NCBI GenBank assembly: GCA_904063045.1 | Contig: CAJFCJ010000014.1 | Span: forward strand, 124,001-188,000 | Source of the DNA: Dimorphilus gyrociliatus | Lineage: Eukaryota; Animalia; Annelida | Direction: 5' to 3' | Length of the DNA: 64,000 nucleotides | Shown: positions 22,215 through 61,784 of the stretch, piece after piece | Numbering within the stretch: the first letter of the stretch is position 1 | Layout: every line of letters begins with the position of its first letter | The notes under the pieces: generated by a model | Told to the model about the DNA's origin: nothing | Seen by the model: only the letters and a program-made list of their open reading frames with translations | Databases searched by the model: none | Made by a program: the position numbers and the translations under genes

Positions 22215-25206
22215 TTAATTGTTTTCTCTTTTTACCTCGACAGTTTCAAACTCTTCTTCAAAGTCATTCTCAATAATCTTGTCTCTATCGACACCGCACC
22301 ATAGTTTTCTTTGTATAGACATTGGGAGGCAGCAAAACACTCTTTGGAAGAACGGTATTATCAATCTTGGATCTTGTTCACTTGGTTTTTCAGGACCGGT
22401 TAATAGACTAACGATGGTACCGATGATTAAGCAACTAAATGTACCGATTGCCGAAAACCACATAAAAGATATACGGAATAGGCCGAAAACACCATCCTTG
22501 TCCCCTGGAACTCCCTTTAATTCTACGAGATTTAAATCTGAGCAGTTGTTCATACTTGTTGAAAGTCGAGCGCTATGAGGTTTAGTAACGTATTGGCCAA
22601 TGGTAACGGTCAGGGTTAAGATTAAACCAATCCAACCGCCAGCCAAGGCACCTTTCCAATTTGCGAATGGGATCAATCCGCCCAATAAGAACATTCCCAA
22701 TAGTGGTCCTGCAACACCGCTGACGAAACTCTGAGATGCTTGGAGTACGTGTCCTCCTAATGTCTGAGCCATAAAAGCCATGCCTACGGCTATTATACCG
22801 AAAACACCAACGAGAAGTTTGTTAGCCAAGGCCTTACGTTCTTCGGGAATATGGTGAAATTTCCATTCCAAAAGATCTTTCCAAGTAACGGCTGCCAAAG
22901 AATTGAGAGAAGAAGAGAGCGTGGAGAGTGCACCGGAGAAGAGAACAGCAACAAAAAGACCCGACAGACCCTTAACATTGATTACCTGGCTGATAAAGAA
23001 GGGCAAGAGTTGATTTTGGTTATTTAAAATAGTGCTATTATTAACGCCGGCTCTAAGAGGATCGCAGCCCAAAGCGTCAAAATAAGCAAAGACAACTAAT
23101 CCACAAAGGCAGGTTAGAGTATAAAAGAGGAGCATGGCTGGAGTATTTAATATAACTGATATTCTTCCTTTGTTCATGGAAGATACAGAGCTATTTGAAA
23201 AGAATTAAGTATTAATGTAAATATGGCACCAATTTTCGAATAGTACGAGAGTTTACCAGTATCTTTGAACGGATGTTTGTCCAGTACCAGTTGTTTGAAC
23301 GGAAGCTATCACTCTGCCAACGACAACAGACCAAAAAGACATTCTTATCAAGGGATTTGCGTTCATGCTAAGTTTGAGAGGGGAATAGGGTTAGAGAAAG
23401 AGAGAAAAGATAGGATGATAATATTTACTTGAAAAATTTAATTCTTCCTGTGTCGCTAGCTCTTTTGAAAACTTCTTTCATTCCTCCATCAATTTTGTTA
23501 GTACCCATAACAAGAACAGTAATTAGACCACCAACCATAACGAGCGCTTGGAAGACATCTGTCCAAACGACAGCTTTCATACCACCCTAAAAGCAGTACA
23601 AGGTATTGTATAGGAAAAATTAGAAAAAGAAGACAAACATTAATGACAAACATAGAAATGGAAAGAACAGAAGCCGACTATTTTAATCTTTTCTTATTGT
23701 TCCAACTATTTGTAAATTGTATACATAGTTAGGAAAGAATATTTACCAAAGTTGTATAAATAGTAGCAACGACGCCTGTAGCGAGAATAGACGCCCACAC
23801 TGGAATATTTGTAACTGTTTTTGGAAAGAGAATTATTCATATTTACTATCAAGTTCAAGAGGATGGATAATAATTATAGAAAATGAACTAACCGGCGTCT
23901 AAAGCCGTTGCTGGAGAGAACATAGCAATTCCCATATAAAGAATCTGTTGGTTGATAACGGATTGTTACAACAGTAATAATAACAATAATAATAAATATT
24001 AATAAGCATCTAGATAAGAAAAAGGGGAATAGATGATTCTCACCTGAGATAACATAAGAAGAATTGTACCGGATAGACGAACAGATCTTGATTTGAATCT
24101 CATCTCAAGATACTAGAGAAATAAAAAGAAATGAATGAATGAATGCATTAATAGTTAGTTAACAGTTTTATAATCGCAATATATAATTGATAATTAAAGA
24201 GAAATTTCAACATCTTTATCTTGAGTACAATGTTGAATGTCTTCGTAAACTTAGTCAATTTGGGGAGGAGAAAGGTTGAAGAATTAAAAACATAAACAAT
24301 GACAAGGAAGAAAGATATGCAGAGCACTTTTTTTTATATTGAAATTAGTAAGAAATAGAAAATAATACAAAAAAAAGATTGAACTGCACTTAAAAAACTC
24401 TTATTAGATAAGTATAAAGATAGAGAAGATAGAGATAATAATGTTTTTATCTATCGCCTAGCTACGATTACGATCAAAAATACAAATTAATAGATTAAAC
24501 GACTCTTTAATAAATAAAACTCTTAAAGATTTCTATCTTTTCTTTTTTTTTTCACGCTCTAAATGAGTGACTTTCAAAAGATTAATGGAATTGCACAGCC
24601 TTTTCTCTCCAACTGGACTGGGGAATGAATGTTTGAATGGAGAGGGCCGATAGAAAAATCAACATTCTTTTTTAAAAATATATACCTGAAACGATGATGT
24701 AATGTTTAAAGGGTAGAATAGTGGCACGAAAATTACTGACGATATAGCAAAAGCCAATGAAGAGCCAACTGCAGCCATCCACATTTGCGTTCCGTGCAAA
24801 TACATTTCGGCAGTATTTCCAAGAATTAGGATAGCAGATATATAAGACATGAACATAGATAATGCAACGGGGATAACGCCTAAACTCCTATGTAGAGGGA
24901 AAAAGTAAAGGGTAGAAAAATTGAAAGAAAGTTGTCACAATGCTCAAAACTCTTACTTGTTACCCATAAGGTATTCCTTGGTCGTTTTCTGTTTTCCTCC
25001 AGCAATTGCATAGTATATACCAATGCCAAGTGAAATCAGAAGAGTTCCTGCAAAAACAGTTGAAAATTTTGCAGAGAGAGAGAGAGAACAGTTAAATAAA
25101 TTCACAAGAAAGGAGAGAATAAATGAATAAATAGAGAAATAGTATAAAGAATCTTACCGATAAACAAAAGGTAATCTGCCCAATGAAAGCTTGTCTTAAT
25201 CTCCAT
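22215..25206 (-). CDS. SLC5 sodium:solute symporter (SLC5A8/SLC5A6-like), copy B, 9 exons, convergent with copy A
   Basis: ATG 25206 ([12 protein letters not shown]). Motifs [53 protein letters not shown]. The last exon, 23190-22215, is uninterrupted. Confidence 0.93.
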
Positions 25207-39333: not shown

Positions 39334-40083
39334 ATGACAACAGTAGCATCAAATACAACTTCGTATCTAGAAACCTTCTCCTCTTTTGATAGTTTCTTAG
39401 CTCATCAGCGACCAATAGTTCCGTTAGTTCAAAAATTCGGTACCCCAATATGGTATATAATCGGATTTGTTGGTAATACTTTAGCCTTTCGGCTGTGGAT
39501 TAAGAGAAACATGAGAAATTCGTCGGGCTTCTATTTAGCCGCTTTAGCTATGTCAGATCTCATATTTTTACTTATGAATTTGCTGTTTGAACTTCAAAAT
39601 ACGTGGCAAGTAAACGTGCTGTATCAACCTGGAATTTGTCAATCTTTTCCGGTAATATATATGGCTATACAGTACCTTTGCCCTCTATTGGTCTTGGCTT
39701 TTACAGTTGAAAGATACATTTCAATTTGCCATCCCTTTAAAAGTGAGGTATTTTGTACAATGAGCAGAGCTGTTAAAGTGACGATTGGCCTGTCTCTTTT
39801 AACTCTGGCCCTTCATGCTGTTCAAGGCGAGTACTTGTAGAGTCTGATTGAACATTTCTCATGAAATATATAGCACATGAGTAGAGCAATAGAGATAAAG
39901 AGATGCTTATATATTTTAGTCTATTACCAATAGGTGACGCTACCAAAGAGAAATCGTCATTATTAGTTTTATATATATATATATATATATAATTAATTAA
40001 AAAAGGAAAAAGCTTAGCTAAGGGATTTTTCCTGTATGTTTTCGTTTAAAATAGAAATGCTTTAAGATTGAATGGCTAAGGTA

Positions 40084-40135
<52 letters not shown>

Positions 40136-40830
40136 AAGAGATTGAATGAGAGCAAGAACCTATTTTAATAATCTATTTTTGGATTCGAAATATAGGTTAT
40201 TTTTGGACGTTTGACGCAAAAAACAGGGAATGTACTCTGAGGAGAAGTGCTATTGCTGGGGATCCTTCATTATGGTCGGTTTATACTTGGTGTACGGAAT
40301 TGATTGTTTTTGCCCTAGTTCCCGTAGTTATACTCGTACTAAATGTATTGGTTATTAGGGAAGTTAGGAAAATATCAAAGTCAGAGGAAAAACGCCTATT
40401 TAAACATACGACAAAATCCAAAGGAGGAAGTAAAACATCTGCTACAACCGTCACTTTATTAGCCGTCTCTTTCTATCTAATTGTAACCACACTTCCAGTG
40501 ACGATATTCTATTCGATGGGACATTCGTTCGAAAAGGGCGATCTGAGTCTATCGGAAGAAGAGATAGAAGAAGACAAAACCTGGCAGAGATACTTAACAT
40601 TTTGGACAATTAGGATATTCGTTCAGCAATGGGGAATGTCTCATTACGCTTGTAATTTTTTCATTTATCTTCTAACTGGTAAAAAATTTAGAGATGAACT
40701 AAAGAAACTTCTGTGTAAGAGGATGCCGTGGAAAAATGACGATTATAATAGAAGCGTCATGTTTAGTGCCCTACCCCAAACAGAACTTAAAAACGGTACG
40801 TCAGGTCAAGGTCTGACTAGTTCTGTATGA
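39334..40830 (+). CDS. Class A (rhodopsin-like) peptide-type GPCR, FMRFamide/sex-peptide-receptor-like group, 2 exons (39334-39826, 40196-40830), 375 aa
   Basis: TM1 GFVGNTLA, TM2 YLAALAMSDL, TM3 FTVERYISICHP, TM5 LVPVVILVLN, TM7 NFFIYLLTGKKFR. The exons join in frame only through a GC donor at 39827 and the AG at 40194-40195. Confidence 0.9.
40084..40140. repeat. Compound (GT)n(GA)n microsatellite in the GPCR intron
   Basis: Direct tandem units. Confidence 0.85.
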
Positions 40831-41153
40831 TGAAATTATTATTTATGATTACATATTATACATATATGCATTTGCAGTATAAACCAAAGTGTAGGCTGGC
40901 AAACAAACAAACAAACAAAGTAACTGATATACAGTATATTTGTAGACATTATATGCGTATTCTTAAGAACATTTATCAGTGTGTACGATAAAAACAACAT
41001 GCATACTTTTCGCATATACAGTCTTTGCAGTATATGTTCCAGCTTTTATTCTTTCTTCTTATTTGCTCTCTCTTCTCTCTCTCTCTCTCCCTATAACCTA
41101 CTATTAATAAAGACACAAATTATTCCAATTTCTCTTCCTCCTCCCTTCTATTC

Positions 41154-43044
41154 CTAGCAAAAACTGGATATCGTCTTTCTTCGTTCTTTAATAAACAAAT
41201 TAAACTCATCATCTTCACTCGTTACTCTTTCCAGAATATAACCCTTATCATTACTGTTAATCTCTTCAAAAAGTTGAAAAACCCTTCTTTTAAAATTTAT
41301 ACTTATCAAACTGCAATTGAAATTTCTACTGCAATATTTAAAAGTATTTAAAAGTGACGTAAACTTAATCTCTTCCTTATTAATTAGCCTCTTTCTTTTC
41401 ACAAGTACGAATATTTCGCGATTATCTTTCGAGCTATTTGATGATTTAACTAGATTATTTATATTCTGAAGATTTCTTTGTGGAGATGAGGTAAAAGTGG
41501 CCACTGTAGTTGTAGGCGAAACTGCCAATCTTGGAGGATAAAAGCTGTAGATAAGGTTAAATAGTCATTAATAGCAATTCTTTTTATAAATATCAATGGG
41601 AAAAGGCATGAAGGGGGGCGGGGAGAGAGAGTGAGGGAGGAAAAAACGGACAGAGTAACGGTAGTTTAGCTTAGGCTAAACAAGTGCGAATAGGTGGGAG
41701 TATAGTGTAAATAAATCGAGTAATGTATATAATTACCTAGTGATTAAGGGGGCGGAGGTTGACAAAGAGAAGGGATCGCCAAAGTAATAGGAATATAATT
41801 CAATTTCTCTTATGAAAAGCTTATGAGTTTGTTTATTTAAGACGGAAATTTGTAAAGCTCTTCCTTGACAAGGTAAATAATTCCAATAAGAAATGTACCA
41901 ACAACTTCTAATGCTAATGAAGCAACTTGTCACATTTTCGTCAGCACCTCTTAATCGAATTTCAACTTGACTGTTTTCTAAAGAGCAAAGAATTGTTATT
42001 CAATTATTTAATGGATGATAAAGGAAAGATAAGAGGATGTGGTTTGTTGTCGGTGGGAAGAAGGGTGGAGAAGGGAAGAAATAGGAAAGTGAAGAGAAAC
42101 AAGAAAAATCAGTATCTTTTTTTAGAGTGTAAGGTCTTATGCATGGGATATAGTTTGACAAGAGTATTTCTTTTTTATTTGGTATTTGTTACCTCTAGGA
42201 AGAAATCTCATTCTAATGATATTTATTAGAAATTCTTTTCTTAGTTGAATAGAAAACTTTCTTAGACCGTCCAAAGGAAAACTATTATACATTTTTCCAT
42301 CTATTAACTGACTAGCCAATCCTTTTCCGCCGTATGCTTTACCTCCCCTGGCTAAATTCTTGGAAATACCGTCCGAAATTAGACCTACTGATTCTTCCAA
42401 AGTCGCTACTAAAACCTTATTACCACTAATAAAACTTTTGACAGCTAGAGAACCGCCATGTATTCCGGTTGGGACGCTAGTCGACTGTTCTAGCTCTTTA
42501 ACTGCCTCTATAGACGTTCCTGTACGATATATATAATTTTTCAACAAAAGTAAAAGTCATCTTATGCGTTCCATTCGAAAAATGATACTAGACAGAGTGT
42601 ATGAAGTACTTAATAGTGAATTTACCCGAAGGCGAAGACAATATGATAGCTAAACATCCTTTCTCTTGGTAGGAATTCAATAATCTATAACAGGTCTTGA
42701 AATAAATTAAGGTCGGAAGTCGAAAGATGATTATCTTTCCCCGAACAGATTCGAGATCAGGTTTATTCATACTACGGCAATTATCTTTAATATATTCAAT
42801 GATAACTTCACCTTTTATCTTTAAAGAAGAGAAATTAATGAATATTTGAATCTTGAAAGAAAACGACAATTATTATTCCAAATACCTTTAGCCAAGAATT
42901 AAAATAAGAAGGAAATGTGCGTATGGAATATCGAATCATTTCCGGTAGAAAATGAACATAAAACTCTCCACTATCAAGAGTTAAGGAAGGAGAAATAAGT
43001 AGTATGGAAACAATTAGGAGACGGCAGGTTAGATTCCTTTCCAT
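41154..43044 (-). CDS. Putative secreted mosaic protein (436 aa): signal peptide, PA-like domain, F5/8C/F-type-lectin-like domain, S/T linker, PAN/apple-like domain
   Basis: Five exons (43044-42886, 42818-42626, 42519-42193, 41977-41737, 41544-41154) with canonical GT-AG junctions join into one 1311-nt open frame. The N-terminus is hydrophobic (LLIVSILLISPSLT). Domain calls are by motif pattern only. Confidence 0.75.
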
Positions 43045-44024
43045 TTCTTTCTTTCTTTCTTTCTTTCTTTCTTGCTTTCTTTCTTCTCTTTGTTTTATTC
43101 CATTTGGAGATGTAAAGGGAGAGAAACCTTTCTTTCACATTTCATTGTGTCTGGGTATTAATCATATAATTCAAATTATGATTATCATTATAATTACCAT
43201 TTTCCCTCGTCTTGAATTTATTATTCTTTGTTCTTTTCTTTCAAATTAGATAAATCAATTCATATGCAAAATCAATGTATTCCACTTTTCAATAACTTTT
43301 TAAATAGCTCTTTCCTCTCTTTTCATTCCCTTCTCTCTTCTGCCTAAAGTTAAACGGCAAGGAGGAGATACGTCGACTCTTCCCCTTCTTCCTTGTATTG
43401 TCCCGTGTCTGATCTTTACTCCTCCATCAGTAGTACAGGCCTGTTAATCTAATGTGCACACTTACAACGCGTATTTGTTTATAGACCATCTTTATTTTAT
43501 AGGTTTTTCTCTTAAGAAAATCTTTCAAGCATGAATAATCACTTTTTATTAATGATTTTCATTTTTCCTTCTTAACCTAGATTCATTATTTATTTTGTAA
43601 AATGATAACATCACTTTTTTTTCCCGCCAAAAAAAAAATAAATCAATTGTGCCTGTCTGTCTGTCTATCCTTCGTTCTTTTTCCCCTTCTCTCTCTCTTC
43701 GTGTCCTCTTCTACTCATTTCCCACTACTCTTTCTTGTTGTATTATTCTCTTTCAATATTATCGTTATAGGCCTAAATTTCCCCCTCGTTTTTTCCACGA
43801 AAAAGGAGTTTTGTATAGGCTGGTTTCCTGTTTCATATATACGTCTTTTTTTTTTTTCTCAGAATAGTTTTTATACAAAAACTAATGATTTATTCGAAAA
43901 AGAAAGTGATTTCATAGGAATTAAGATAAGTGACACTAGTTGGATTATGTCATATTATGATCAATATCTAGGAATTTAATATTATACTCGAAGTGAATTT
44001 CGCACGGTTCTTTTTATTCGCGTA

Positions 44025-46498
44025 ATGACTTTATACCAACTTGGTTATAAAGACTATAACGATTACGTAGAAACGTTGGATAATTTAACAGGTAAATAAA
44101 AATGGTTAGATATTTGTAAAATATTTGAATAAAGCGAATATTTTTAATAGAAAGCATTAAAGCGAACTTAGAAGGAAGAAACGATGATGACTGGAAAGAA
44201 TTTGATAATGGAATCGTTAAGTTTATGAAAGAAAACAAAATACCAGGAATATCATTAACAATTGGACGAAATGGAAATATTATCCATGAACAGAGTAAGA
44301 CAAAATTGACAAATAGAGTAATCTTATGACTTTGCATAATCGGTATTGTTTCTCTTTATTCTTCTTGACCAGCTTACGGTTTTGCTAATAGAAGAGAAAA
44401 AGTCAACAAGTCAAATCTATTCAGAATTGCTAGCGTAAGTAAGATGCTAACTTCAATTGGAATTTTAAGAATTATTCAAAATGGTGGTCAATTGAAATTT
44501 CATCAAAAAGTCTTTGGCCGAAACGGTTGGTTGGGAATAAAAGAAAATATCTTCATTCATTGAATCATTCATTGTAAACTTTGTTTACTGTTTAATTATC
44601 ATATTAGGCATCCTATCTTCCTATTCCCCTACTGAAAGTGGCGATAAACGCCTACTGAACATAACTGTTCGACACCTTTTACAGCATAGTGGCGGTTGGG
44701 ATAGAGAGATAGCGGGCGATCCAGTCTTTTATAAGAATGTTGGTAAGAATATGAAAGTTGATGAGCCAGTTTCGGCCCAAGTATTAATATCTTATATGAT
44801 GGGTCAGAAATTACAGTTTAAACCAGGTAATCTAATGAGGTTTATATAGTGTATTCACACTCTCTTTGTACGTAGTAAAAACAATAAACAATTTCCTCTC
44901 TTTCCCTCTGTGAATAGGCTCAATTAATTGAACGCCTTTAAGCTTATAATCTACCTATTCACCAGTTCATCTTCTCCTTTTTAGGTAGTAAATATTGCTA
45001 TTCAAATTTTGGTTACGTCATTCTTGGAAGAATAATTGAAAAAATCAAAGGCGTCTCTTATGAAGAGTATATTAAATCTTTTCTTACCGATATTGGCGTA
45101 GATGATATGAGAATTGGAAAAACCCAATATTGCCATAGACTTATTGAAGAAGTAGAATATTTTGTAAACCCTCTAATGGGACCTATATTAGGAAAAAGCC
45201 TATTCAGCACAGACGAAGAGGAAGATGATGGAAGCCAAGTTCTATTACCATACGGATCGTTTTGTCTAGAGAGTGGAGATTCGGATGGAGGTTGGCTAGC
45301 TACTTCAAAGTCTGTTGTAAAATTGCTAATGAGTCTGAGCAAAGGGGAAGGTGAAGGTTGTTTATTAAATAAGAAATTAACAAATGAAATGATGAAGAAA
45401 CCAAGATATAAGAATAACAAACAATCAACTTGTTGGTACGGATTGGGCGTTGATGTTATAGGCTTCGATAAGTTATCTTTCGAACATACAGGACATTTGG
45501 ATGGTTCTACTTCTATCGCTTTAAGAAACGATAAGGGATATTGTTGCGCTCTTCTCTCCAACTACTGGCCGTTTGAAAGCGACTATTCAGGCTTACTATC
45601 AAATCTATTAAATAGAATCGAAGATTGTAGTTTGTACAGTATTCCTAATATTTTTGGCGAGTTTAAAGAGTCAATTTCGTTCTATTCGGAAAGATTCATG
45701 TTGTGTTTGAACGTTGAATTAAAGAACTTGAAGGAATTCAACAATTTTTGTAGATATAACTTGAATATGGGACCGTCTACAATTTGCTGTTGTACAGTTA
45801 AAGGCGTTATCTATTGTTACGGATTCTGGGTAAAAGATTCTAAAAACGAGCTATTAGTGTGTTCAAAGGAACTTGTCGTAGAGGAAATTAACAGGATAAA
45901 AACTGCTAACCTTCGCCTCATTTACGTCTATTTCGTACGAAATATTGATGTGTATTTATTAGTATTCGGTCAAGGTCAACCGAATACTACGCACTACCAA
46001 CTCGAATCCGACGAAGCGGACTTGGAAAGGATTCTGTCAACACCCGACGTACGAGTTGTATCGCTTACATTTAATAAGGAGCGCTATTGCGTTGTTTACG
46101 AAAAGGATGAGGAGGAAAGGGACAAGGAAGGCGGAAAGTCTACTAGACTGGAAAAGAAGAAATCCTATAGACAATACGTAGAAGTGAATAAAGAAGAAGA
46201 GTATGATAAAAAATTTAATATGCACTCAAGGTACGGAAGAATGCTGTCCTTTCTCTTCTTTTCCGAAACAGGCGATAAAATAGCATCTGTGTGGAACGAT
46301 AGCGGATCATTCTATTTCTCGGCCGAGAGGGAAATGTCCAAATACCAACTAATAACCGATTGCGGTTATCTTTACCGGAAAGGTTATAATCCTCTCTCCG
46401 TGACGTCATACATCAAGGACAATTGCCTGAAGTTTGCTTCGGTGTTTTATAAAACACCGCAAAAGAGGAAACTGACGACAAGAACGTTTAAAAAATAG
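44025..46498 (+). CDS. Beta-lactamase/DD-peptidase family serine hydrolase (698 aa) with C-terminal degenerate polyglycine-hydrolase-like (BTRD1-type) tandem repeats
   Basis: Five exons (44025-44091, 44151-44294, 44373-44525, 44608-44826, 44985-46498) in phase, 2097 nt. Motifs KIPGISL, FRIASVSK (SxxK), LLQHSGG, YCYSNFGYVILG (YxN), FEHTG. The C-terminus has GYNPLSVTSYIKDNCLKFASVFYK-type repeats. Confidence 0.88.
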
Positions 46499-47402
46499 TT
46501 GTTTATGGTAAAATGTCTAAGCAAAACTTGACCAATAGTTAATTATTACAACCACAAAGTATACGTTGGGTTGTTTTCTTAATTCTTATACTCGATAGAT
46601 GTCGTTAGTTGGTAATAAACTGTGCGCTTTTTTTGTTTTTTTGTATAGGCGTAGGATAGGTTGATTCCTGGTACCGTATCCGTTCAGTAATATGAATCGT
46701 TTGACCACAATTTAAAACAGATAAGAATTGTATTCAGATCCAAATTGAAGTAGAACACGATCTAGCAAACAAAGTTGAGGAAGATAAAAGGGATAAAGTG
46801 AGAAGTAAGGAGGCGAGGACAAGAAAGAAACCTAGTAGTCGGTAGTGCGTTGAATGTCAACACAAAAATACAACTATATACCAATATAGGTGATATAGGT
46901 ATATGTAGATAATTAGAGTCGGTCGGATAGCTAGATAGCGAGGTAGAAGAGGAAAAGGAAGAAGACAATTGTATATAATAACGTTGATATTTATGATTAT
47001 ATTTAAGTATCTATTGATACAAAGAAATTTCTGGATGCTAATTTAAATAATGAAGAGAAAGAGTTTTAAAATACTATGTTCAATTCTATGCATCATTTTA
47101 CTCATTGGATCAATAATAGCGATATTATACTACTTGTTTTTCCATAAGAATAAGCAAGAATATAAAAGTAAGTAGAAAATTTCCTATTGCACTTAATGGA
47201 TAAATATTCTTTAATTGTTTTAATCATATAACAAGCAAACAAACAAACAAACACATTTTTGTCAGGTTTGAATTTGTATTGCTGAATATATTCGTGCTTT
47301 TAAAGGCGATAACACTGTTTCAGATAGATAGGTTGATAGAGAGACAGAGACAGACAAACAGAGAAACAGAAGCAAATATATTCAGACTTTGAACCTAACA
47401 GT

Positions 47403-49229
47403 ATGGCAATATTACAATATAATATATACAATACATATGTACTAAGCCTATGTTTATATATCCATTTTGTTACAAACAATGGCAAAGGAATCTTTTTAAT
47501 GAGAAAACTTTGTGTGCTTTGTTCTATAGGACCAACTATTTTGAAGCCACCTGTCGGATTGATATGGAATTCTAAATGTATGGTTAAAAATCCAGAATCG
47601 TCTTCGGAAATTATGAAAATTGTCGATAGTAAATTACCGTGGGATTATTTCCCTTTCAACTTATTTATTTTCCATTTTGATAATGGCAAAGATTGTTGGC
47701 CAAATTCCAAAGAGAACGTCACTATTTCAAAAGTACGTTATAAAACTAATAAGTACGGAGTCTATATATCAAATATTTGCAATATAACATCCAAAGAATT
47801 GAGTACTGTTAGTAAGAAGATGTTGAAGAAACTTGAATACATCAGATTTGGCTATCAGACGCAAGTTTGCGGTGAAAAATTCGACGACGATTTCATTAGA
47901 AGTTTAAAGGACGGATCATCAACAAGCGTAAAGAACATTCTACATTTTCCCTATAAATTCAACATAGGAGAGGCAAAATTAACTGCAGATATACTAACTA
48001 TATCTCCACCTTTTATAAAGGAATACGTATCTGCAATAGTCGATAATTATCTATTAGATTATAAAGGGATCTTCCGTTCCGGATTCTTTCCCTACGCAAC
48101 TTCGCTAGAATTGAATAACCAATTCCAATTCGTTATGTATTGCCTAATGAAATCTCCTATTTTCGTAGATTATACCCTACATAATTTCTATTCAAAGAAA
48201 ACTATACAAACATTTTCCCAAGAGATTCTAAACAAACATAAATCGTTAATCGACTTTCATCAAAGTGAAAAAACATGGCCGATTTCCTTAAAAGTTTGTA
48301 ATAGACATAAAAGTTTCTCATTTCACTTTTTTCATCTCTATTTTTGTAAATTGAATATTCAAACGAAAATCAAAAACTACTTTTATGTCTATTATTTATC
48401 ATTGAAAACAAAAGGCGGGATCCTATATCAAAGATAAGAAATCTCATTCTAGACGCTTTCAAGTTTTCTCAAAACCCAACAGCAACGCTGGCGTTGACAA
48501 TGGAATACAAAGTTTTTGGAGATCTCAACGTCTTCAGCAGAATTCCAATGAATTTCGTTTGATATTCACCAACTCATCGGATAAAGATAGTTGGCTGTCT
48601 CTGTGTCTAACTGCCCGCGGACAGACGTTAAGGATTAAAGAATGCGATAATTCGTAAGTAAATCTATTTGAATACTGGATAAAAGATTTGCAGTTTGATT
48701 GTTATGTAATAGGGCAAAAGGAGGGCAAGGCGAACAAAGTCAAACGTTCATTTATTCAAAGAAAACCAAACAACTTATGAATAAAAAGTCGAAAAGTTAC
48801 GTTTGCCTACCGAATTATCCATATTCACCTGTAAGATTCGAGTCGATAGCTCAGCAAGATTGTTCGCTTCGTATTCAGATGAAATTGAACAAAAACGGCA
48901 ATTATCTATTGCACAATGACCATAATTTATACATGGGCGTTGGTCTATACGACCTGTACGAAGTTTATACAAGGATTGACGCCACCCAACACCTTTACGC
49001 CTTTATAAACTTTCATCCGTCCAATTCGGAAACGAGAGACTTGTCTGCAAAAACGATAAGAGGACTGCATCAATTATATAATTATAACTTTAAATGTACG
49101 GATTCATCAAGATCGCCGACCACTAAGGAGTTTCTAATCGGTGACAAAATCAAGATAGAGGCGAAAACAGTTCACTATTGTTTTATAAAGGAACTTGCGG
49201 AAGATTACGATCAATATGAATATGCATGA
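47403..49229 (+). CDS. GH27 (alpha-galactosidase/NAGA)-like pseudo-enzyme with a C-terminal ricin-B-like beta-trefoil (~532-548 aa)
   Basis: Exons 47403-48293, 48415-48653 and 48713-49229 join in frame (possible extra in-frame GC-AG intron 47482-47529). Ordered GH27-like motifs: NNG..PPVG..W, KDCW, KYGVY, EYIRFG, TADI, FVMYCLMKSPIF, LIDFHQ, FQVFSKP. These are followed by CLTARGQTLRIKECD...QTFIY...QLMNKKS..VCL. Confidence 0.72.
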
Positions 49230-49780
49230 GTTCGCTGAAATCCGAGAGAAACAATTAACAATTTATTAGAAATAGACGAGCAATTAAAAAGGAGTTAAAT
49301 ATCGTTCAAAGGAGAGAAAGAGAGAAATAGTTATAAAACTGTGTGCTTTTCTCTACCCTTTTTTCTTTTTTTCTCTCTTTTCTCTCTTCTTTTTGATTAA
49401 ACTTTTTCGTAACATCAAAAGATAAAGAATGATAAAATGATAGTTTAAACTTACTCAAACGACAATCATTTTTATCTAAAAGGAAAATCAAGTAACGCCT
49501 CTCTCCTTTAAAGAAAAAACTTTGTATATATATACAGTATATATATAGATATAGAGTAGTATCTTTATAGTTTTGGCGTCTATCTTGTGCGCGCGTTAGC
49601 ATATATTGTCTAAAGCTGAATGCGTCTGTGCACGTATTAACATATACGTACATGTATAGAACATTGGCAAATACTTGTACAAGTGAATCTCGGTAATACT
49701 CGACAGAGCTTTTAAGGAAAAGTCAAAAAAAGAAATTGCTAATCCTAACCTAACTCAAATCCAAAAGTTAATCAACAATT

Positions 49781-50893
49781 ATGGCTTTTAATTCGACGAG
49801 ACGAAACTTTACCTTACCAAAGTTTGACTGGGAAGCTTGGTTTGAAAAGTATGTACCCAAGTTCCATCACGCAAAAACGATGGTAATAATTGTTTCAACC
49901 GTCTGTTTGTCACTATTAATAATTGGATTCTTTGGAAATATCATTAGTTGTATAATCTTTAGTAAAAAGAGTTTAAACCGTTCAACAACTTCGGTATTCC
50001 TACGTTTCTTGGCAATAATCGATTCAATTTGTTTACTGTTCAACTGCGTTCTATGGAAAATAAGATTGTTTATGGGTTTTTTCAATCTTTCTGATAAAAC
50101 TATTCAAATGTTCATATGCGCATTCACCTATCACGGATCGTTCGCCTTTAATCAACAGAGTTCGTGGATAATTGTAGCCATGACCGTTGATAGGAGTGTT
50201 CATATTTTCTTTCCGACAAAGGCGCAAGTTTTATGTACGAAATTCAGAGCGTTCATGTTCTGTTCCTTTATCATAGTGGTAACTTTAGTATTCTATCATC
50301 CTTACTATTATCTGTATAAGGAGGGAGCGTATATCTCCATAGACCCAAAGGATAAATATTCGATTGTAATGAGTTGTAATACGATCTCCGAGTCGGCTTC
50401 CTATTACTTGAAAGATATACTGTTCCCCTTGGATAGTATCATGTATTCAGTCGTACCATCGGTTATACTGATAGTTATAAATATATTAATGATTCGTCAC
50501 GTCTACAAGTCGACGAGGAGAAGAAAAGAGATGACTCAAGGAAAAACTGACAAGGCAACGAGTAAGAAAACACTGCAAATGACTATAACCCTTATGTGTA
50601 TAAGTTTCTATTTTTTCCTAACTACATTTCCAATATCCTTGAACGTTCTTATATTCCATTTTAGAAGAACTACGACTCTAAGGGAATATATCAAGTATTT
50701 ATCTTATACAAGATACTTTAACCTTTTCGCCTATACTAATAATGCGGCTAATTTCTTTATATACTGCCTTTCCGGCTCAAAGTTCAGATCAGAATTTATA
50801 AAGTTATTTCGTAAGAAGGCGAAGGGAAGGGAAGGATCGAAAAGTCTGTCGACTTCGAATGGCTCGTCGTTTAAAGGCCAATCGCGTTATTGA
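49781..50893 (+). CDS. Intronless class A peptide-type orphan GPCR (370 aa)
   Basis: Single ORF with 7 hydrophobic segments: GFFGNIIS, FLRFLAIIDS, AMTVDRS (DRY variant), VVPSVILIVINI, FFLTTFP, NFFIYCLSGSKFR. Confidence 0.92.
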   Translation: MAFNSTRRNFTLPKFDWEAWFEKYVPKFHHAKTMVIIVSTVCLSLLIIGFFGNIISCIIFSKKSLNRSTTSVFLRFLAIIDSICLLFNCVLWKIRLFMGFFNLSDKTIQMFICAFTYHGSFAFNQQSSWIIVAMTVDRSVHIFFPTKAQVLCTKFRAFMFCSFIIVVTLVFYHPYYYLYKEGAYISIDPKDKYSIVMSCNTISESASYYLKDILFPLDSIMYSVVPSVILIVINILMIRHVYKSTRRRKEMTQGKTDKATSKKTLQMTITLMCISFYFFLTTFPISLNVLIFHFRRTTTLREYIKYLSYTRYFNLFAYTNNAANFFIYCLSGSKFRSEFIKLFRKKAKGREGSKSLSTSNGSSFKGQSRY

Positions 50894-52184
50894 AAGAATG
50901 GGGGGAGGAAGATGAGAGATGGCGGATAAGAGACGACCGATAAAGAACGGCGAATTGTATTTTCTTTTCAAGAAAGAAGGCAACATTTTCCACCTTCTTT
51001 CCTCTTGTCAGTATGTCGTTTGTTTGCTTGTCAATTAAATACTGTTAAGACTAAGTATATCACTAAACACATATTCTAATATATAATCACACATTGCGAC
51101 TTGATTCACGTTATCCGTCTTATTTCTTTGATATACAGTATATACTCTATAAACTCGTGTGCAAAAATTGACCTATTATTCTTCATCATATCTTTCAATG
51201 GAGTGTCATACTTTCCCTTATCCTTTCATTTATTTTCCCATACGTAGGGTTTGGAAGGTGTATATTCAGATTAATATTCACCCTCCTCCTCATTTAGTTA
51301 CACCGTGTACAAGATATAAGGCTGTATGTACATTAATTTCAATATACAAGCCAATATAAGCCACGCCCATCAAAAAAGGATAAGTAATGCTTCATATTTA
51401 AATTATTATAATACATACGTAAGACAAGGAAAGAGAGAAGGGGCTTGGAGGGCGGAGAGGAAAAAAAACAGGGATAGAGAGAAGGAAATAACAAAAAAAG
51501 TGCGAATGAAAGTAGAAACAATGAAAAAAAGTTTCGGGTTTAATATTCACATTTAGTAATCTATGTAGACTTTAGCTTTTATCTATTTCGATCAGATTAA
51601 ATATCCTTTTTTTTTTGTTTCTCACGCTTCTCCCCTTTGTATAGTTTCTATAAAAAGTCATAGGGCTGTTGTTTAGCAATGCTATGTAACTTTCTCTGTC
51701 ATTTTCTCCTTCCTAATAAAATGTTCACTTTACTGGCTGTAGAGCGGTAAGAACGAAATATAGTTAACAACGACTTACACACCAGAGGGCATTAAACATA
51801 ACATTTAAATATGGCAGAGTAGAGTTTGTGATTGAGTAAATAGTATAAATTAGACAGCGAAGAGTTAATGAATAATATGAAGAATGGTATTAATTATAGT
51901 TTGTAGGAAAATGAATGGGAAGAAGAAGAAGAAGAAGAAGAATAGGGGAAGAAGAGAAAAATGAATTTTTCAAGTAAACAAAATAAATCTGTATTTATCG
52001 TTAGTCAATGAAGATAAAGCAACGAAAACAAACTAGCGTTAATTTCATATTTCTTACCGTCTAGAGTTTTATTTCTATATAATAATATACTAATAAGGGT
52101 TAGATTGAAATTTATAGACCATGTTTGTTGAGTAAATCAACATATATATATATATATAAATATCTAAGACGTGTGAATGCATGT

Positions 52185-52217
<33 letters not shown>

Positions 52218-52322
52218 TATATTCATATTTATGTCCTCAGAGAGAGAGAGAGAAAAAAAAAGAAAGGGGGAGAGAGAGAGAGTCGATATGCATAAAAAAA
52301 AATGACAAGATAATAATTAAGT

Positions 52323-53553
52323 CTAGAAGTAAAAATTAACAAGAGCTGAGAGACTGAAGCCGAATAGGACGCATAAAATTTTCATAAGGTCGTCATTATC
52401 ACCAATAGCCTTGTGTAAAATTTCAAAAAAGCTGACAAACAGAAAAGTTCCTGTTGAAAGTCCCTGAAGAACTGCGCTCACCAAATTTAAACTGGAACTT
52501 GGCTTTGCCTTATTTCCTAAAAAGGTAATTACTGTACCAACTGCTATACCAACTGGTGTCATAATAGAAAAAGCTGCTATTAGCGTTACTATCCTTCTAG
52601 TATCGTTTGAAAATTGCTTGGTGAACTGAACGCCTAATGAGAATATTATTATAGATTTATGTAATAGGATAGCTATAGTCAAACTCCACATTTGACCTTT
52701 TTTATTTTGAAGACCAACAGCCAAACCTTCAAAAATCATGTGTAAACTCAAGGCCAAAAGTAAAACAACAGCTCTCATCCCACTCTGCATCGAAGACGTA
52801 GAAGGTGAAGGAGGAGAAGAAGGAGGAGGGGAAGGAGGAGGGGGAGCAATAGGAGGGGAATGAGAAGGGTGATGATCATGACAATGATGATGGGCATAGG
52901 TTTGAGAATGAGGAGGATGAGAATTAGATAAAAGAGAGGAATTATGGTCGGATTGCTGTCCTTCAGCTAGGTTAACTTCAGTCCTTATCTCTGCTTTCAC
53001 ATTTTCATAAGAGGCCTAAAAAAAGTGAAAAATATGAAACACGTGCAATATTCAAAAGAGAACATCATATCAGTTAATAATCGATTAGTATCTATCGGTT
53101 AAAATTTGCTATTTTTGTATTACGTTGAATAAAATTACAGCGTACCTGACAATCCTTTAACAAAGGAGAATGCTCTCCACTTTCTGAGGGAAATAAATTT
53201 TTTGCAATTACCCATCTTCGTTGACAAACAACCGCTAAATTTTCAAGGATTAGCACTAGCAGAAAGCCAATAGCCGTTAAGAATTCAGCCAAAGGATAAT
53301 CAATTGTCAATCCATTAGCTTTTTCGAAGATGGCTAGTTGTTCATTAACTTCCGGTAAGAGGTGGAGAAGTAGCGTTCCTAAAAATATCCCACCAGCAAA
53401 GCAGTTTAAATAATCTATAATATTTTTAGAAGTTTCGTCTTTTATCCTTTTGTTCTTGAGCATAGTTAATGGTTTTAGGGGAAGAAGACCCATGACAAAC
53501 GATATAATAGAGATAAGTGAGAGGGAGAATATTTTTAGAATCCATAATTCCAT
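52323..53553 (-). CDS. ZIP (SLC39 subfamily II; ZIP1/2/3-like) zinc transporter, 2 coding exons (53553-53146, 53015-52323), 366 aa
   Basis: LNCFAGGIFLGTLLLHLLPE, His-rich loop HHHCHDHH, LALSLHMIFEGLAVG, AILLHK, SIMTPVGIAVG, LQGLSTGTFLFVSFFEIL. Phase-0 GT-AG intron. Confidence 0.93.
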
Positions 53554-55328: not shown

Positions 55329-58300
55329 ATGACACTGGTAACCACTAAAAATGATAAGATAAAAGACGATAGAGCAGCTGTAGACGGTGTTCTTTTATCT
55401 CGAATTCAACTGTTGGTAATAAGCAACGGAGGTCCTGGTAAGAAACTTAATATTTATCAATATATAAATATATACTGTATATATACAGCCGCGGTCATAA
55501 ATATCTATACATGAAAAAAAAAATTTTTTTTTTCTAGAAAATAATTTTTTTTTGGATTTCTTCAACAAAATTGTTTGTTCTTTTTTTAAATATTTGTTGA
55601 AGAATATGTTATAAACCAGAAAATGGATTTAGTTTACTGAAAAAAATATTCTTATATAAAAAAAAGAATGTTTTTTAATTCTATGTTTATTTATCATTAA
55701 AAATAGTCCCAAAAAAAATGGCCAAAAATATTTATATAAATTTAATTACATAGTTTGTCAAGGTTTTTTTTCTAAATTTTTGCGTTTTGTCTCAGTCTAA
55801 AAACTACTTTTTAATTCTGTTTCCTTTATTGATAATAACTTGCCAAACTCTCTCCCCGATTCCTCTATATAAATTTTTCACAAAATCTCTATTGCTTGTA
55901 TTGATTTTGTCCACCTCTTCCTGTATCCTGTCCCATAAATGGTCAAGGGTTTTTGGTGTTTGAATTTCATACACTTTAATTTTTAAATAACCCCACAAAT
56001 TCTCTATGGGGTTGAGGTCTGGAGAGTATGGAGGCCAATCAAGGACTTGAATTCCATTCTCCTCCAGGATATCCATTGTTACTCTGGCAGTGTGTGGGGG
56101 TGCATTATCCTGCTGAAAGGTGAAGTTTTCTCCAAATTTTTCCTTCAAAATTGGGAAAACTGTTCCCTGAAGAAATTCGGCATAAATCTCTCCAGAGATG
56201 TTGGAGGGAAGTCTTTGGATAAAAACTTCACCATCTGAGGATATACACCCCCACACCATCACTCCTCCTCCACCAACTGGAAGCTTATCTCTAAAGAGCC
56301 TTGGCCTGTCATTGAGCTGCCAGGTTAACAGATGATTGGGACCATCCAGCGAAAACCTGGACTCATCTGTGAAGACCACATTTTTATATTCAACTTGGCT
56401 CTGAATCCATCCACCCAGTATATTTAATCGTGTGGTTTTTGCTCTTGCTGACAAAGGGCATACCTTCAAAATGGGCAGATACTTTGCTCCATTTTTATTT
56501 AGAATCCTTCTAATGGTTCTTTCAGAAAGATCCAGGCTTAAGTTATCCTTAATTTTTTTAGCAGTTGCCAACTCTCTTTTTTCCTGTAATCTTATGCATT
56601 CTCTTTTAATTAGTGACTTCAGTCTTTCACTGGCTTTGGATGGTCTTCCCCTTTTGTCAGGTTTTCCTGCTCTTTTGTTCTCACAGATATACAGGAGTGA
56701 AGGTTTTGGGATATTTAAGTCTGCCTCAAGTTCTTTATAGGTCATTTCAGCTTTTTTCGCCCTTGCTAGCTCTCTAATTTGAGAATGATATTTCATTTTG
56801 ACAAAGAAATGTAAGTAATTATCTGCTGAGTCAGATTTGTTCTAAATTCAAATGTTCTAAAAACTATTTAGACAAAAAACATGTTTTTATAGATATTTAT
56901 GGCCATTTTTAAATTATATAATTTAATTGCAAAAAGCACTTGTTGTCTAAAATTAAAAAAAAAAAGTACTTTTAAAAGCTGAAAAAAACAAATGTTGTAT
57001 GAAATTACATAAAATACCCTTTAAACAACATCATTCTATTTAAGAAAAATAATTTTATTTCTCAAAATTAGAGAAAAATGAGTTTTTAAAAAAAATATTT
57101 TCTTTTTTTTCATGTATAAACATTTTTGACCGCGGCTGTATATATATATATAAAATCCTATATATATATATGTATACTTATGTACAGTATACATATATAA
57201 AATAGACTGCCTTTCACCACTATTTGCACAATTATCGTTATTATTGGTAGGAAAATGTTTCCACTTTTGCGCTTTTTATTGTTTACGTGACTCTTTACGA
57301 AGCGGCGAAACGCCTATAAACAATAGGTAAAAGTCGCGGAATAAAAGTAAGAATATTACCGAATAGACGACAGGAGAGGAGAAAAGGGGAGAAGAGAAAA
57401 GAGGAAAGAAGAGATTGCATTAGCGTTCTTCGTAAATGAAATAACGTCTCATCTCTATATTTTTATTATAGTCTTAAATGTTAAATTGGAGAGTAGCAAG
57501 TATCAGCAACAACTATAATAATAGCGCAATCATCATTATCACGTACGTCATCAGTAAAGTAGCATGATCTTTCAACAAGCTACTAGTAGTTTTAATGCTA
57601 ATCTTCATAAAGAGAATGAGTTATAACACAGTTTTATTATAATATTAAATAGACAATGTAATGTTTTCTAACAATTTCTATCACGCACTTTAAAAACGAA
57701 ACTAATAATGCTTCGGTTCCTGTTCCACCTCCGCCCTTCCTTCCCCTTTTCCGTCTCGCTCGTTTCCTATTATCTCCTATAATTCTTGCAATTCCTATTC
57801 GCAGAATTTGGATTGGAGAGGCACAAATTATGGAACGATTGCCTACCTGAATTGCAGCAATTTTGTTTGCCATTGAACATTGAAGTAGAAATAAGCGATA
57901 TAAATTTTGGTTTAAGTAAAGATTTGTCGAATTATCCTCAACTTTTGAATGATTTTATCGAAGAAATATTAAAGGTCGAAAGCTCATCCTGCCTGAAAGT
58001 TTGTCTGGTAAATTAATTATACTTTTATTGAAGCATAATTCTGCACTGAATTAGTTGTACTCATTAATGTCGAAAAAGATGTATGTAAATACTATTTTAC
58101 AGATATTATTGGGTGATAAATACGGTTGTGGTGCTTTACCGCTTACAATTTCCAACGAATTATTTCAAGGTGTTTGCAACGAATTAACGAATAATATAAA
58201 TGGTTTGTATTCGAATTATTTCCCTCTCTCTCTCTCTCTTTCTCTCTATACACTTCCTCCCTTCCCTTACCTTACTTACCCGCCTACCCTCTGTTAAATT

Positions 58301-61300
58301 TCGCGTCATTCCCTCTCCCATCGCAAACTTCTTTTATATATTTTTACTGTCTCCCTAATCGAATTAATTACGTTTACAGATACAAACTTTCTAAAGGACT
58401 GCTATATACGAAGTGAACTATCCAATTCCGTAAATTACAGACTGAGAAAGCGAGTAGAAAGATGGCGAAACCCTACAGGGTGAGGGATAAAAAATTAATT
58501 AAAATCTTTTTTCCCACTGTACACTATGACAGAATAGGCGAAATAGACATAATACTAAATGAGACAGTATATGACTACATGTTTATATATATTTTATAAG
58601 GTTAGAGATAAATAAACACGCCAACGCCGAAGCATATGCATAGACAAATAGTCACTGAGGTAAAAAATATTACGTTTGTTTTTACAGCCTAGTGCAAGCG
58701 TCTATGGAGACGCTGTTCTTCTTTTTTTTGTTCATTTATTAACGTGAATATAAACAGTAGATAAAAATAGTTATACTATATTTAGGAACCTACTAAAGGA
58801 GGAAAGAAAGAAAAAAAGCAGTTCCCATTTCTTTTGATGATTCTTTTTTTGTACCAAAATCTTTGTTTATAGTCGATTTTCATTGCATTGATTGGAAGCA
58901 GGCAAGGATCAAGTTTATATTTTAATGATAGTGTATTATATACAATATATACAGTATATAGTATAAATGCAGTATCTACGTCCAAAAACACGAAACTAAC
59001 GTGATTAGTAACAAAAATAGGCAAGTTTCCAATTAAGCATCCTATCGACAATTAATTACAACGTGATATTTTGCTTTGCTTCCATAATATTAATAATTAT
59101 TCAATGCATAAATATACAAAAAAATAACGCATTATTCCCTATTCATTCTGGGAAAATACAAGGAAAAGAGAATAGTAGCTTCAATACCAAATACACAATA
59201 TACAATGCATATAAATTTACTAAGTAACTAAGAGAAAAGAGAAAAAACCAAGGGAAAAAAACATGAAAGAACGCAAGAGGAAGGGAGCGATATGAAAACC
59301 TACCCAGGGTAGGTAATGTTGTTTAGGTGGGGAGTTAAGAAGGGGAGAAGAATAGAAAAGAGGAAAAGTGAAAGAGAGAAAGCAAGAAAGTAAGAATGAG
59401 TGAATGAATAAACGACTATGTATAATAAGAATAGAGGAGGAGGGGCATAAAATAAAGAGGGAAGAAAGAAAAGCTAAATAAAGCAAAGAAAAGCCAATAC
59501 ACTAATATGTATTATATATATATATATACTGTATATTGTATATAACAACCAATATGTTTATATATGGACATATATAGGTTGATGTGGTGCTAATTCTCAT
59601 ATTTGGATGAAGTACATGCATTTTTAATTCATACCGTACCCAAAGCTAACCGTACAATTATTTCCCACGCTCAGTCACTCAGTCACCTGCTTATGCATAC
59701 AGATATACTAATATATATATATAGAAACAGTATATAGAAACACAAATGTACTCCAAGGTATTACCTAACGTAATTAATGCCTCTTTTAGTTTCACTCACT
59801 TTCCTCTCTCCTCTCTAACAATTGTCTAGGATGGAGAGAGAGAGAGAGAGAGAGAAATAGCAATGCTATTTATTTCCTTTATAGAATAGGCAATTCTGAG
59901 AAATCGTATGAAAACTGGCAAGAGGAGGAATCTAAATTAAGACGTTTATTTACAAGCCATAAAGGCGACCAACTCAACAAACATCTGATAAAATCTTGTA
60001 AGTATACCATATATATTACACTCTATGTCAAAATCAAACCTTTAAACGACAAGACATATTTTTCCTCATGCATTAATGCATACACTGTACACAGTGCCTA
60101 ATCGATTGGCATTACACCTTCATAATTTTCTTCAGGTATAGAAAAACAGGTGAAAGCCGCCTTCCGCAATGACAACTGCAACCTAATAGCCGTGAGCAGA
60201 GTGCTTGAAAGTAAGCTTTGAATTTTCTTTTATCGTTGTTTTCAAGTTCTTCCTCTCTGTCTTTCTCTTTTACTCTCCCTCTCTCTTTTTACTGTTCGTA
60301 TTATCATTGCAACTATTTCAAGTCTTGGCGCATGCGCCTTTAAAACGAACTAAACCTCTTCTATTTACTCTGGCAATGACTATTTTAAAAGTTATGATGT
60401 TCTGTATATACAAATAGTATAAATACGTGTCTAGGTATGTATGTATGTATGTATGTATGTATGTATGTATGTTTGTTTGTTTATGCTATGGTAAGTAAGT
60501 AAGTGAGTGAGTGAGTGAGTGAGTGAGTGAATGAATGAGCGAGGGAGCGAGTGTACGTCGGCATATACTCTTATTATACAGTATGTTTATATTATGCTGT
60601 AACTCGTCTTTGATTTCTTTTTCTTTTCATTTCCTCTTGTTCTTTATCCCTCAACCTCAAATGCTCTTTCTCACATTATTCTCTATCATCTTCCTAATAC
60701 AGACATAGACATTAACGATACTCAGGCCTATAACTACACGGATTTGGACGGAAAATCGATTTGTCCTCAAAAGTCGCAACTTTTAAAAGATTTAAAAGCG
60801 TCTGTTAAGAATAAAGTGAAGCAACATTATTACCACGAATTCTATATAAACTGGGAAAGGAATGCTATCGATTGCGAAGAGTTTAAACAGCATTCAGATT
60901 ATCTCGCTAATTTTAACGCTTTCGTCGTTACTAGAGTTAGAAAGTTGATAGACAGATTTACGAAACATAGGCCTACTTTGCCAAAAAGAATATGCAATCA
61001 CGATACAGTAAAAGTTCTTCAATTAGAAAGCGATTTTCTAGCCAACGTTACGCAATATCGAAATTTAACTTATGAGCAAAAGTTTACTGATGGCAACTTG
61101 GGGAAGAGTCTATCGTCGAAATTGGAAAATACGTGTTGGCTTATAGAGGAGGAAATAGATTCCGGCAAAAGCGCTCTACTAGCCAGTATCTATTATGAAT
61201 ATTACAAAGATTCAATTGTTCTCGGGCAATTTATCAACGAACATTTTAGGCCTAGTCCTGCTGCTTTAAAGAGAAATTTCGAGTTGCTGTTGGGATGGAA

Positions 61301-61750
61301 GTTGAAAGAGAACTATCGTCTAGATATTCAAAGTTTACTGATAAAAGCGTCGGAAAAGTCAAAGAATGTTATCTTGCTGATCGATAATCTGCATTTAGTC
61401 TCTTCTCAAACAGATAGTAATCATGATTTTGAATGGATATTTCAAAAGTTACCAAGTTCCGTTCATATAGTGTGCTCAATATCACCGAATGCCTTAAATT
61501 TGAATGGTAAATTGTTCAAACGTTACTCTATCAATTTCTCAACAGAAAACGCCATTCAATATATAAAAAATACATTATCCAACCAAAACCGAGAGTTGAC
61601 TATAGAAGAGGACTTTTTACTGCAAAAGATCCTTAAAGAAGATGGAACCTGGTTCCTGGTTCAACTTTTACAACATTCTTTATCCAACGAAATAAATCGG
61701 TGAGGTTTTTATTCATTAAGTTTGTAGATAGAACGAAAGGTTAATTATCG

Positions 61751-61784
<34 letters not shown>

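Follow-up and report, generated by a model that had tools for sequence, protein, structure and literature searches.

Between two genes for G-protein-coupled receptors (GPCRs), the annelid Dimorphilus gyrociliatus carries three consecutive spliced genes, here called genes 1 to 3, and the question raised by this locus is whether they form a working unit or are neighbours by chance. The genes lie in a stretch of 64,000 nucleotides, contig C14:124001-188000 (GenBank CAJFCJ010000014.1) of the 77.9 Mb assembly, which was analysed at its full length and is called the window below. An earlier note on this DNA had taken them for an island of uncommon glycan- and cell-wall-interacting proteins, possibly a co-regulated module for sensing or processing microbes and possibly in part of horizontal origin. 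Our analysis points to three lineage-restricted genes that are functionally independent and came to lie side by side by chance in a gene-dense genome, which we consider the probable reading; as a block the three appear ordinary and do not stand as an immune island, and genes 2 and 3 are of modest interest individually. Gene 2 is an annelid S12 hydrolase of bacterial type that is well integrated, bears introns and, judged from its motifs, appears to be active. Together with its paralog, gene 3 would represent an animal GH27-ricin enzyme that has decayed past profile detection into a membrane-anchored pseudoenzyme, and gene 1 is a fast-evolving predicted secreted orphan protein.

Gene 2, a hydrolase of bacterial type

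All searches with genes 1 to 3 used single exons, stop-free frames or database proteins as queries. Exon 5 of gene 2 matches Pfam family PF00144 with 49.7 bits (cut-off 27), and exons 3 and 4 match it with E values of 5.7e-5 and 3e-4, respectively. The SxxK, YxN and HxG motifs (Table 1) are shared with bacterial CubicO and Pab87-type S12 D-peptidases and their AmpH-like relatives, and an exon-by-exon alignment places exons 2-5 collinear end to end with full-length bacterial proteins. The closest solved structure is Pab87 from Pyrococcus abyssi (2QMI, E 2e-6), and the best database matches are labelled CubicO group peptidase by their sources. Gene 2 probably encodes an S12 serine hydrolase with a class-C beta-lactamase fold, belonging to the bacterial CubicO/AmpH-like subfamily, whose activity is predicted from the intact motifs. 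In contrast to those bacterial proteins, it sits in an animal genome, has four introns and, in the model, lacks the bacterial signal peptide; it also carries a C-terminal repeat domain of a kind (BTRD1) that is essentially missing among the best 80 bacterial loci. Because no signal peptide was seen by eye in the modelled protein, an extracellular role on bacterial walls fits poorly; the protein as modelled would act inside the cell on a peptide, amide or ester substrate.

The repeats occupy, by eye, exon-5 residues 237-284, 287-329, 336-374, 394-438 and 442-490 within a 270-residue tail. The last of them has statistical support as BTRD1-like, the other four being recognized by eye only. Against Pfam BTRD1 (PF17660) this last repeat gives E 0.12, which does not reach the cut-off; against a home-made hidden Markov model (HMM) of bacterial repeats it scores 2.6 where the 99th percentile of shuffled sequences is 1.1 (about the 99.5th percentile); and hhalign aligns it with bacterial BTRD1 repeats over 41 columns, the full repeat, with E 3.4e-4. 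P0001, the gene 2 ortholog described below, gave no BTRD1 match, and the tail of gene 2 aligns with the BTRD1-bearing C-terminus of P0059, a metagenomic protein also described below. The earlier reading of gene 2 as a DD-peptidase or beta-lactamase with repeats is thus borne out in its fold and motifs, and for the repeats weakly to moderately, through the last one.

The known system nearest to this arrangement is the polyglycine hydrolases, in whose solved member a class-C beta-lactamase-fold domain is combined with exactly five repeats of about 44 residues, the repeats coming first (PMC9912923). The fungal enzymes Bz-cmp, Es-cmp and Fvan-cmp (PDB 7TPU) have both building blocks in common with gene 2, which we propose to be a probably active S12 hydrolase followed by a five-repeat domain of the polyglycine-hydrolase kind. 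The differences are considerable. The repeats are N-terminal in polyglycine hydrolases and C-terminal in gene 2 (exon-5 residues 237-490), where the last repeat alone matches BTRD1, and weakly; the hydrolases are secreted and cleave Gly-Gly bonds, whereas the gene 2 model shows no secretion signal by eye; and the nearest catalytic domains of gene 2 are bacterial, not fungal. Proteins with the repeats first, the polyglycine-hydrolase arrangement, also occur in bacteria, as seen in metagenomes, where L110:4507-7041 and L178:4525-6774 encode five N-terminal BTRD1 repeats followed by S12 on prokaryote-sized contigs (123,515 and 35,966 nt), and P0045 and P0058 likewise have their repeats N-terminal to the catalytic domain. 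Gene 2 would add an animal case, in reversed order, to a little-understood five-repeat domain whose function is not known in any kingdom.

A word search in which the best 8000 candidates were scored returned one close relative of gene 2, P0001 (BLASTP 59% identity), an open reading frame (ORF)-style fragment of an ortholog from a Logan assembly (6457-nt contig); it is 56% and 51% identical to gene 2 over exon 5 and 72% identical over exon 4. The best match after P0001 has E 2.6e-29, the named matches in this search are all bacterial (Planctomycetota, Aminicenantes, Omnitrophica, Verrucomicrobiota and Bacteroidota), and no named eukaryotic protein is found among the 120 best matches in a collection of 5.8 billion proteins, those of NCBI and UniRef included. 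At least 561 bacterial or archaeal species genomes encode a relative, among at least 600 pattern matches. The best 80 bacterial loci, mostly from Planctomycetota, are 29-38% identical to gene 2, and over the catalytic domain proteins of Planctomycetota, Verrucomicrobiota, Acidobacteriota and Aminicenantes align collinearly with it at 30-38% identity. Within the D. gyrociliatus genome gene 2 has no close paralog, and in phmmer comparisons with it the 11 other PF00144 loci (contigs C7, C19, C140, C12, C11, C74, C100, C2, C6, C46 and C39; loci L013-L020) give E values above 0.005. Several of these 11 loci are on small contigs and contain in-frame stops.

In a quick, unrooted maximum-likelihood tree gene 2 and P0001 were paired at 99% on a long stem, and the neighbours of this pair were P0059 and P0064 (support 84, with a long-branch warning). 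P0059 is a 729-aa, GC-rich, intronless protein on a 3168-nt metagenome contig of the Joint Genome Institute; it has the S12 domain first and the BTRD1 repeats after it, as in gene 2, matches 7TPU with E 1e-6, and contains low-complexity linkers of a eukaryote-like kind. It could represent the donor lineage, or else a family of eukaryotes that has escaped sampling. A metagenome scan with P0059 gave no matches, and one with alignment A7 gave catalytic-domain relatives only, none reaching into the repeats.

Contamination as the source of gene 2 is ruled out by its four GT-AG introns, its host-like composition (32-38% GC) and the animal GPCR genes on both sides, and for the same reasons the gene must be integrated in host DNA. 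All four introns are in phase 1, which would be unusual if they had been gained independently in a bacterial-type gene (44092-44984).

We regard horizontal acquisition from bacteria as the likelier origin of gene 2, with reasonable though not strong confidence. In this scenario the gene, now a domesticated hydrolase of bacterial type, would have been acquired before D. gyrociliatus split from the relative that bears P0001, and would afterwards have gained four short phase-1 introns and the AT-rich composition of its host. An alternative, possible but distinctly less probable in our judgement, is that gene 2 belongs to an old, fast-evolving eukaryotic S12 lineage that has been lost or remains unsampled in most animals. 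It draws on the top bacterial identity of just 38%, on the long stem branch, on the existence of P0059 and P0064, which have the same domain order and no known taxon (the linkers of P0059 could be eukaryotic), and on the presence of 11 further PF00144 loci in the worm. These 11 loci, however, are far more distant from gene 2 than the bacterial proteins are, the subfamily is abundant in bacteria, and a eukaryotic lineage has to be reconciled with the 120 best matches and their lack of any named eukaryotic protein. Two points count against acquisition from bacteria: the missing animal relatives of gene 2 rest on a word-limited search with its top 8000 candidates scored, and the nearest neighbours in the tree, P0059 and P0064, are on long branches with the taxon not known. 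A look at the literature on beta-lactamase transfer into annelids found nothing relevant. Of the partly horizontal origin suggested for the whole block, what stands reasonably well concerns gene 2, through its 30-38% bacterial identity and the 11 PF00144 loci of its own genome that barely match it.

Gene 3 and its GH27-type paralog

The reading of gene 3 as a dead GH27 enzyme with a ricin-B domain finds no direct match. Neither its exons nor its paralog match PF16499 (Melibiase_2) at E up to 10, the locus is missing from the genome scan with that profile, there is no Pfam match of gene 3 to the ricin-B families PF00652 and PF14200, and a PDB sequence search with the paralog returned nothing at E up to 10. 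The paralog, DgyrCDS11432, is an intronless gene on another contig (C19:663472-665025; L003:1480-3033) that matches gene 3 with E 3e-30 over the main exon and 7e-14 over the last exon; both proteins start with a hydrophobic anchor. Three Logan relatives of DgyrCDS11432 show 61-65% identity to it. About 2.4 kb from it lies DgyrCDS11433 (C19:667083-668368; L011:1225-2510), a catalytically intact GH27 alpha-galactosidase of the plant/microbial type. In the sponge and rotifer relatives of this enzyme the TIM barrel is separated from the C-terminal sandwich by an inserted ricin-B domain. The Logan proteins P0123 and P0129 are 61% and 84% identical to DgyrCDS11432 and DgyrCDS11433, respectively, and both list a longest contig of 20,060 nt; since this figure is the same, the pairing of the two genes may be conserved.

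Through the paralog the family can be connected to GH27. A custom HMM of GH27 proteins with the ricin insert detects the paralog's orthologs P0123 (E 1e-6) and P0122 (E 5e-6), in each case as a single span running from the last barrel motif through the insert into the sandwich, and P0122, the one that was shuffled, outscores all 300 of its own shuffles. The exons of gene 3 in the window are by themselves at chance level with this HMM (exon 4 scores 0.5 bits). Comparison of the gene 3 family with GH27 by hhalign recovered a motif of 13-27 columns only (F..WC.MKAPL, E 0.0027-0.012). When gene 3 was added to a GH27 alignment with MAFFT --add, it was collinear at six barrel motifs, including PPxGW, DCW, KxGxY, PGF and F..WC.MKxPL, and the YLKxDxC nucleophile motif was gapped in gene 3 and its paralogs, in a part of the alignment that has no statistical support. 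The output of hhalign -glob for the same comparison was meaningless and was rejected, and a mixed alignment of GH27 fragments (A2) was too messy and was dropped.

Descent of the gene 3 family from GH27 is supported indirectly, by transitive homology through the paralog, and a dead GH27 with a ricin-B domain is a fair reading of gene 3: the family-level profile match (E 1e-6) and the missing nucleophile motif speak for it, the absent direct matches do not. Here an intronless paralog and a neighbouring parent-type gene recover an ancestry where Pfam and structure prediction fail. We propose that gene 3 is a type II membrane-anchored offshoot of an animal GH27 alpha-galactosidase with a ricin-B-type insert; because the nucleophile motif is lost, its product could at most bind sugars and would not cut them. 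Animal GH27 enzymes with an inserted ricin-B (CBM13-like) domain occur in Oscarella, Corticium, Sycon and Didymodactylos (P0133, P0134, P0157 and P0207), and they have the same order as the gene 3 family, TIM barrel, ricin-type insert and C-terminal beta-sandwich. Unlike them, gene 3 and its paralog reach no Pfam threshold, are without YLKxDxC and have an N-terminal membrane anchor. The architectures of the block had been called uncommon, which holds less well for genes 2 and 3, GH27 with an inserted ricin-B being present in sponges and rotifers and S12 with BTRD1 in bacteria and metagenomes.

Two points weigh against this reading of gene 3. The N-terminal half of the GH27 alignment is not significant alone, and AlphaFold2 failed for both this family and that of gene 1, giving a predicted local distance difference test (pLDDT) score of 35.7 for P0121 of the gene 3 family (7 alignment rows), unusable for the fold, and 41.6 for P0125 of the gene 1 family (3 alignment rows), equally unusable. 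A search of the ESM Atlas with P0121, whose own model there has a pLDDT of 0.27, gave no usable match.

Gene 1 and the question of a module

For gene 1 a PA domain, a lectin-like domain and a PAN domain had been named in the earlier note. Judged by eye, its sequence does bear a likeness to the cores of PA and PAN domains and to a sandwich of the galactose-binding type; no profile match bore it out. The exons of gene 1 have no Pfam match at E up to 1, nor does exon 5, with three cysteines only, match PAN/Apple at that level. None of the 9 genome-wide matches of the PA domain (PF02225) and none of the 119 of F5/8 type C (discoidin, PF00754), both taken at E up to 10, falls on the locus of gene 1; F-lectin was not scanned. 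An exhaustive HMMER search of 1.84 billion representatives with exon 3 found a sole relative, P0125 (39% identity, E 9e-9), a 210-aa ORF-style fragment from a Logan assembly with a contig of up to 4051 nt, which has no Pfam match either. The ESM Atlas search with P0125 gave low recognition and TPR-type chance matches only, so that neither of the two structure routes supports the proposed domains. There is no close paralog of gene 1 in the D. gyrociliatus genome, and its N-terminus shows, by eye, a hydrophobic signal-like segment. In our model gene 1 would contribute a fast-evolving secreted protein.

The question whether the three genes form a module was approached through their spacing, their predicted locations and the company of their relatives. 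With 208.9 genes per Mb the D. gyrociliatus genome is densely packed: its intergenic regions are short, operons are absent and the median intron measures 66 bp (PMC7854359), a figure with which the intron sizes of genes 1-3 are in keeping. From 40830 to 52323, that is from the upstream GPCR through a ZIP transporter gene, the coding-to-coding gaps are 323, 980, 551, 551 and about 1430 bp; because all local gaps are 0.3-1.4 kb, the 980-bp head-to-head gap between genes 1 and 2 is ordinary. The predicted locations differ, with a signal peptide in gene 1, no signal peptide in gene 2 and a type II membrane anchor in gene 3. Genes 1 and 2 are without close paralogs; the paralog of gene 3 stands on another contig beside a probable parent-type GH27, and no relatives of gene 1 or gene 2 are nearby. 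With ordinary spacing, differing locations and an unlinked paralog, a microbe-sensing or microbe-processing module finds no support.

In the module reading the three genes would be a co-regulated cassette for sensing or processing microbes, serving gut or epidermal defence or bacterivory: gene 1 would supply a secreted product of lectin-like kind, gene 2 a peptidase derived from bacteria and directed at the D-amino-acid or glycine-rich peptides of cell walls, and gene 3 a lectin in the membrane. We consider this improbable. Several features would suit such a cassette: genes 1 and 2 diverge from ATGs that lie 980 bp apart; the family of gene 2 includes DD-peptidases, D-aminopeptidases and polyglycine hydrolases (PMC9912923); the gene 3 family goes back to an enzyme that binds sugars and bears a lectin insert; and, within the reach of the searches, all three genes are confined to this lineage. 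These points are outweighed by the spacing, which is normal for the locality in a genome that has 209 genes per Mb and no operons (PMC7854359), by the differing predicted locations and the gene 2 model without signal peptide, by the unsupported lectin call for gene 1, and by a gene 3 paralog without linkage to any relative of gene 1 or gene 2. A glycan or peptide theme as wide as this one suits a sizeable share of the genes of any animal, so that runs of three should occur many times in each genome (an estimate, not a computed figure). Slimmer still is the chance of an antibacterial or bacterivory cassette that is specific to dinophilids and has a captured bacterial gene at its core, with genes 1 and 2 under one promoter, gene 1 as a secreted recognition protein, gene 2 as a D-peptidase or polyglycine-hydrolase-like enzyme and gene 3 as a lectin, all in the same gut or epidermal cells.

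A shared bidirectional promoter, by which genes 1 and 2 would be co-transcribed without functional coupling while gene 3 is independent, is somewhat less far-fetched, and we still think it unlikely. Genes 1 and 2 resemble known bidirectional-promoter pairs in being head-to-head at less than 1 kb, and open chromatin in D. gyrociliatus is short and mostly at promoters (PMC7854359), which would fit; about one quarter of neighbouring gene pairs are nevertheless divergent by chance, and the spacing is the local norm here. A chance neighbourhood remains the reading that we prefer, and some observations weigh against it. The divergent genes 1 and 2, 980 bp apart, could share a promoter; a 5' exon encoding a signal peptide may have been missed in gene 2; and co-regulation of the three genes is not refuted by the features of spacing, location and linkage from which we infer their independence.

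Gene models and other features of the window

The region is AT-rich eukaryotic DNA with 29-38% GC. Both strands were read and the genes checked exon by exon with a script: in genes 1-3 all introns are GT-AG, the phases are compatible and there are no internal stops, and for the exon 2/3 junction of gene 3 the choice followed the phase and the alignment with the paralog that has no introns. Three consecutive spliced genes are therefore present as the earlier note had described them, with genes 1 and 2 head-to-head about 1 kb apart (ATGs at 43044 and 44025) and with 7tm_1- or Srw-like, rhodopsin-family profile matches in the GPCR genes on both sides (Table 1). In the upstream GPCR gene the stretch 40300-40827 also gives 7tm_1 and Srw matches.

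Table 1. Positions of the three genes, their parts and their flanks in the window.
Feature	Position	Strand	Remarks
Upstream flank, rhodopsin-family GPCR gene, at least 2 exons	39334..40830	+	PF00001 7tm_1 E 2.3e-14 on 39334-39837
Gene 1	43044-42886, 42818-42626, 42519-42193, 41977-41737, 41544-41154	-	5 exons, 436 aa; introns 67, 106, 215, 192 nt
Divergent spacer between ATGs of genes 1 and 2	43045..44024	.	980 bp, read from sequence
Gene 2	44025-44091, 44151-44294, 44373-44525, 44608-44826, 44985-46498	+	5 exons, 698 aa; introns 59, 78, 82, 158 nt
SxxK motif of gene 2 (S-V-S-K), exon 3	44432..44443	+	Aligned to bacterial S-L-S-K
YxN motif of gene 2 (Y-S-N), exon 5	44999..45007	+	Invariant column in alignments A6 and A7
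H-T-G motif of gene 2, equivalent of the class-C KTG box	45485..45493	+	H167 and G169 invariant in A6 and A7; aligned to bacterial H-x-G
C-terminal repeat region of gene 2, about five repeats of 39-49 aa	45695..46456	+	Resembles the five-repeat N-domain of polyglycine hydrolases (Pfam BTRD1)
Gene 3	47050-47167, 47530-48293, 48439-48653, 48713-49229	+	4 exons, 537 aa; introns 362, 145, 59 nt
Membrane anchor of gene 3, exon 1	47050-47167	+	Hydrophobic N-terminus; predicted type II
GH27 TIM-barrel-like region of gene 3	47530..48293	+	32% identity, E 3.4e-30 to paralog C19:663493-664287; K-x-D nucleophile motif missing
Cys-containing ricin-B-like insert of gene 3	48439..48950	+	Aligns to the insert of the paralog
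C-terminal beta-sandwich-like region of gene 3, GH27 Melibiase_C equivalent	48951..49226	+	Via the paralog family; GH27+ricin profile positions ~440-492
Downstream flank, single-exon GPCR gene, 370 aa	49781..50893	+	Srw E 4.7e-17, 7tm_1 E 7.1e-16

The spacer between genes 1 and 2 consists in part of a (GAAA)n microsatellite that abuts the ATG of gene 1 (43045-43095) and of CT-rich low-complexity sequence. CT-rich low-complexity tracts are repeated across the intergenic regions of the window.

Elsewhere the window holds unrelated genes, namely those for an ankyrin protein, two sodium:solute symporter (SSF) transporters, an SMP-30-like protein, the ZIP transporter, a DDE transposase and an NWD1-like protein. 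The two SSF genes are adjacent and convergent (19138-23177) and are probably a local duplication. The transposase gene, 6.5 kb downstream of gene 3, is an intact 330-aa ORF on the minus strand (55804-56796) with a DDE_3 (Tc1/mariner-type) domain (E 3.7e-19), and the NWD1-like gene, which combines a winged helix with WD40, lies on the plus strand at the right end (60744-63204). In the genome as a whole the count of exon-level matches to F5/8 type C (discoidin), taken at E up to 10, is at least 119, which makes this a large and expanded family for so small a genome; several of the matches are arranged in tandem, as at C7:2.946-2.998 Mb and on C95, C123, C183 and C43.

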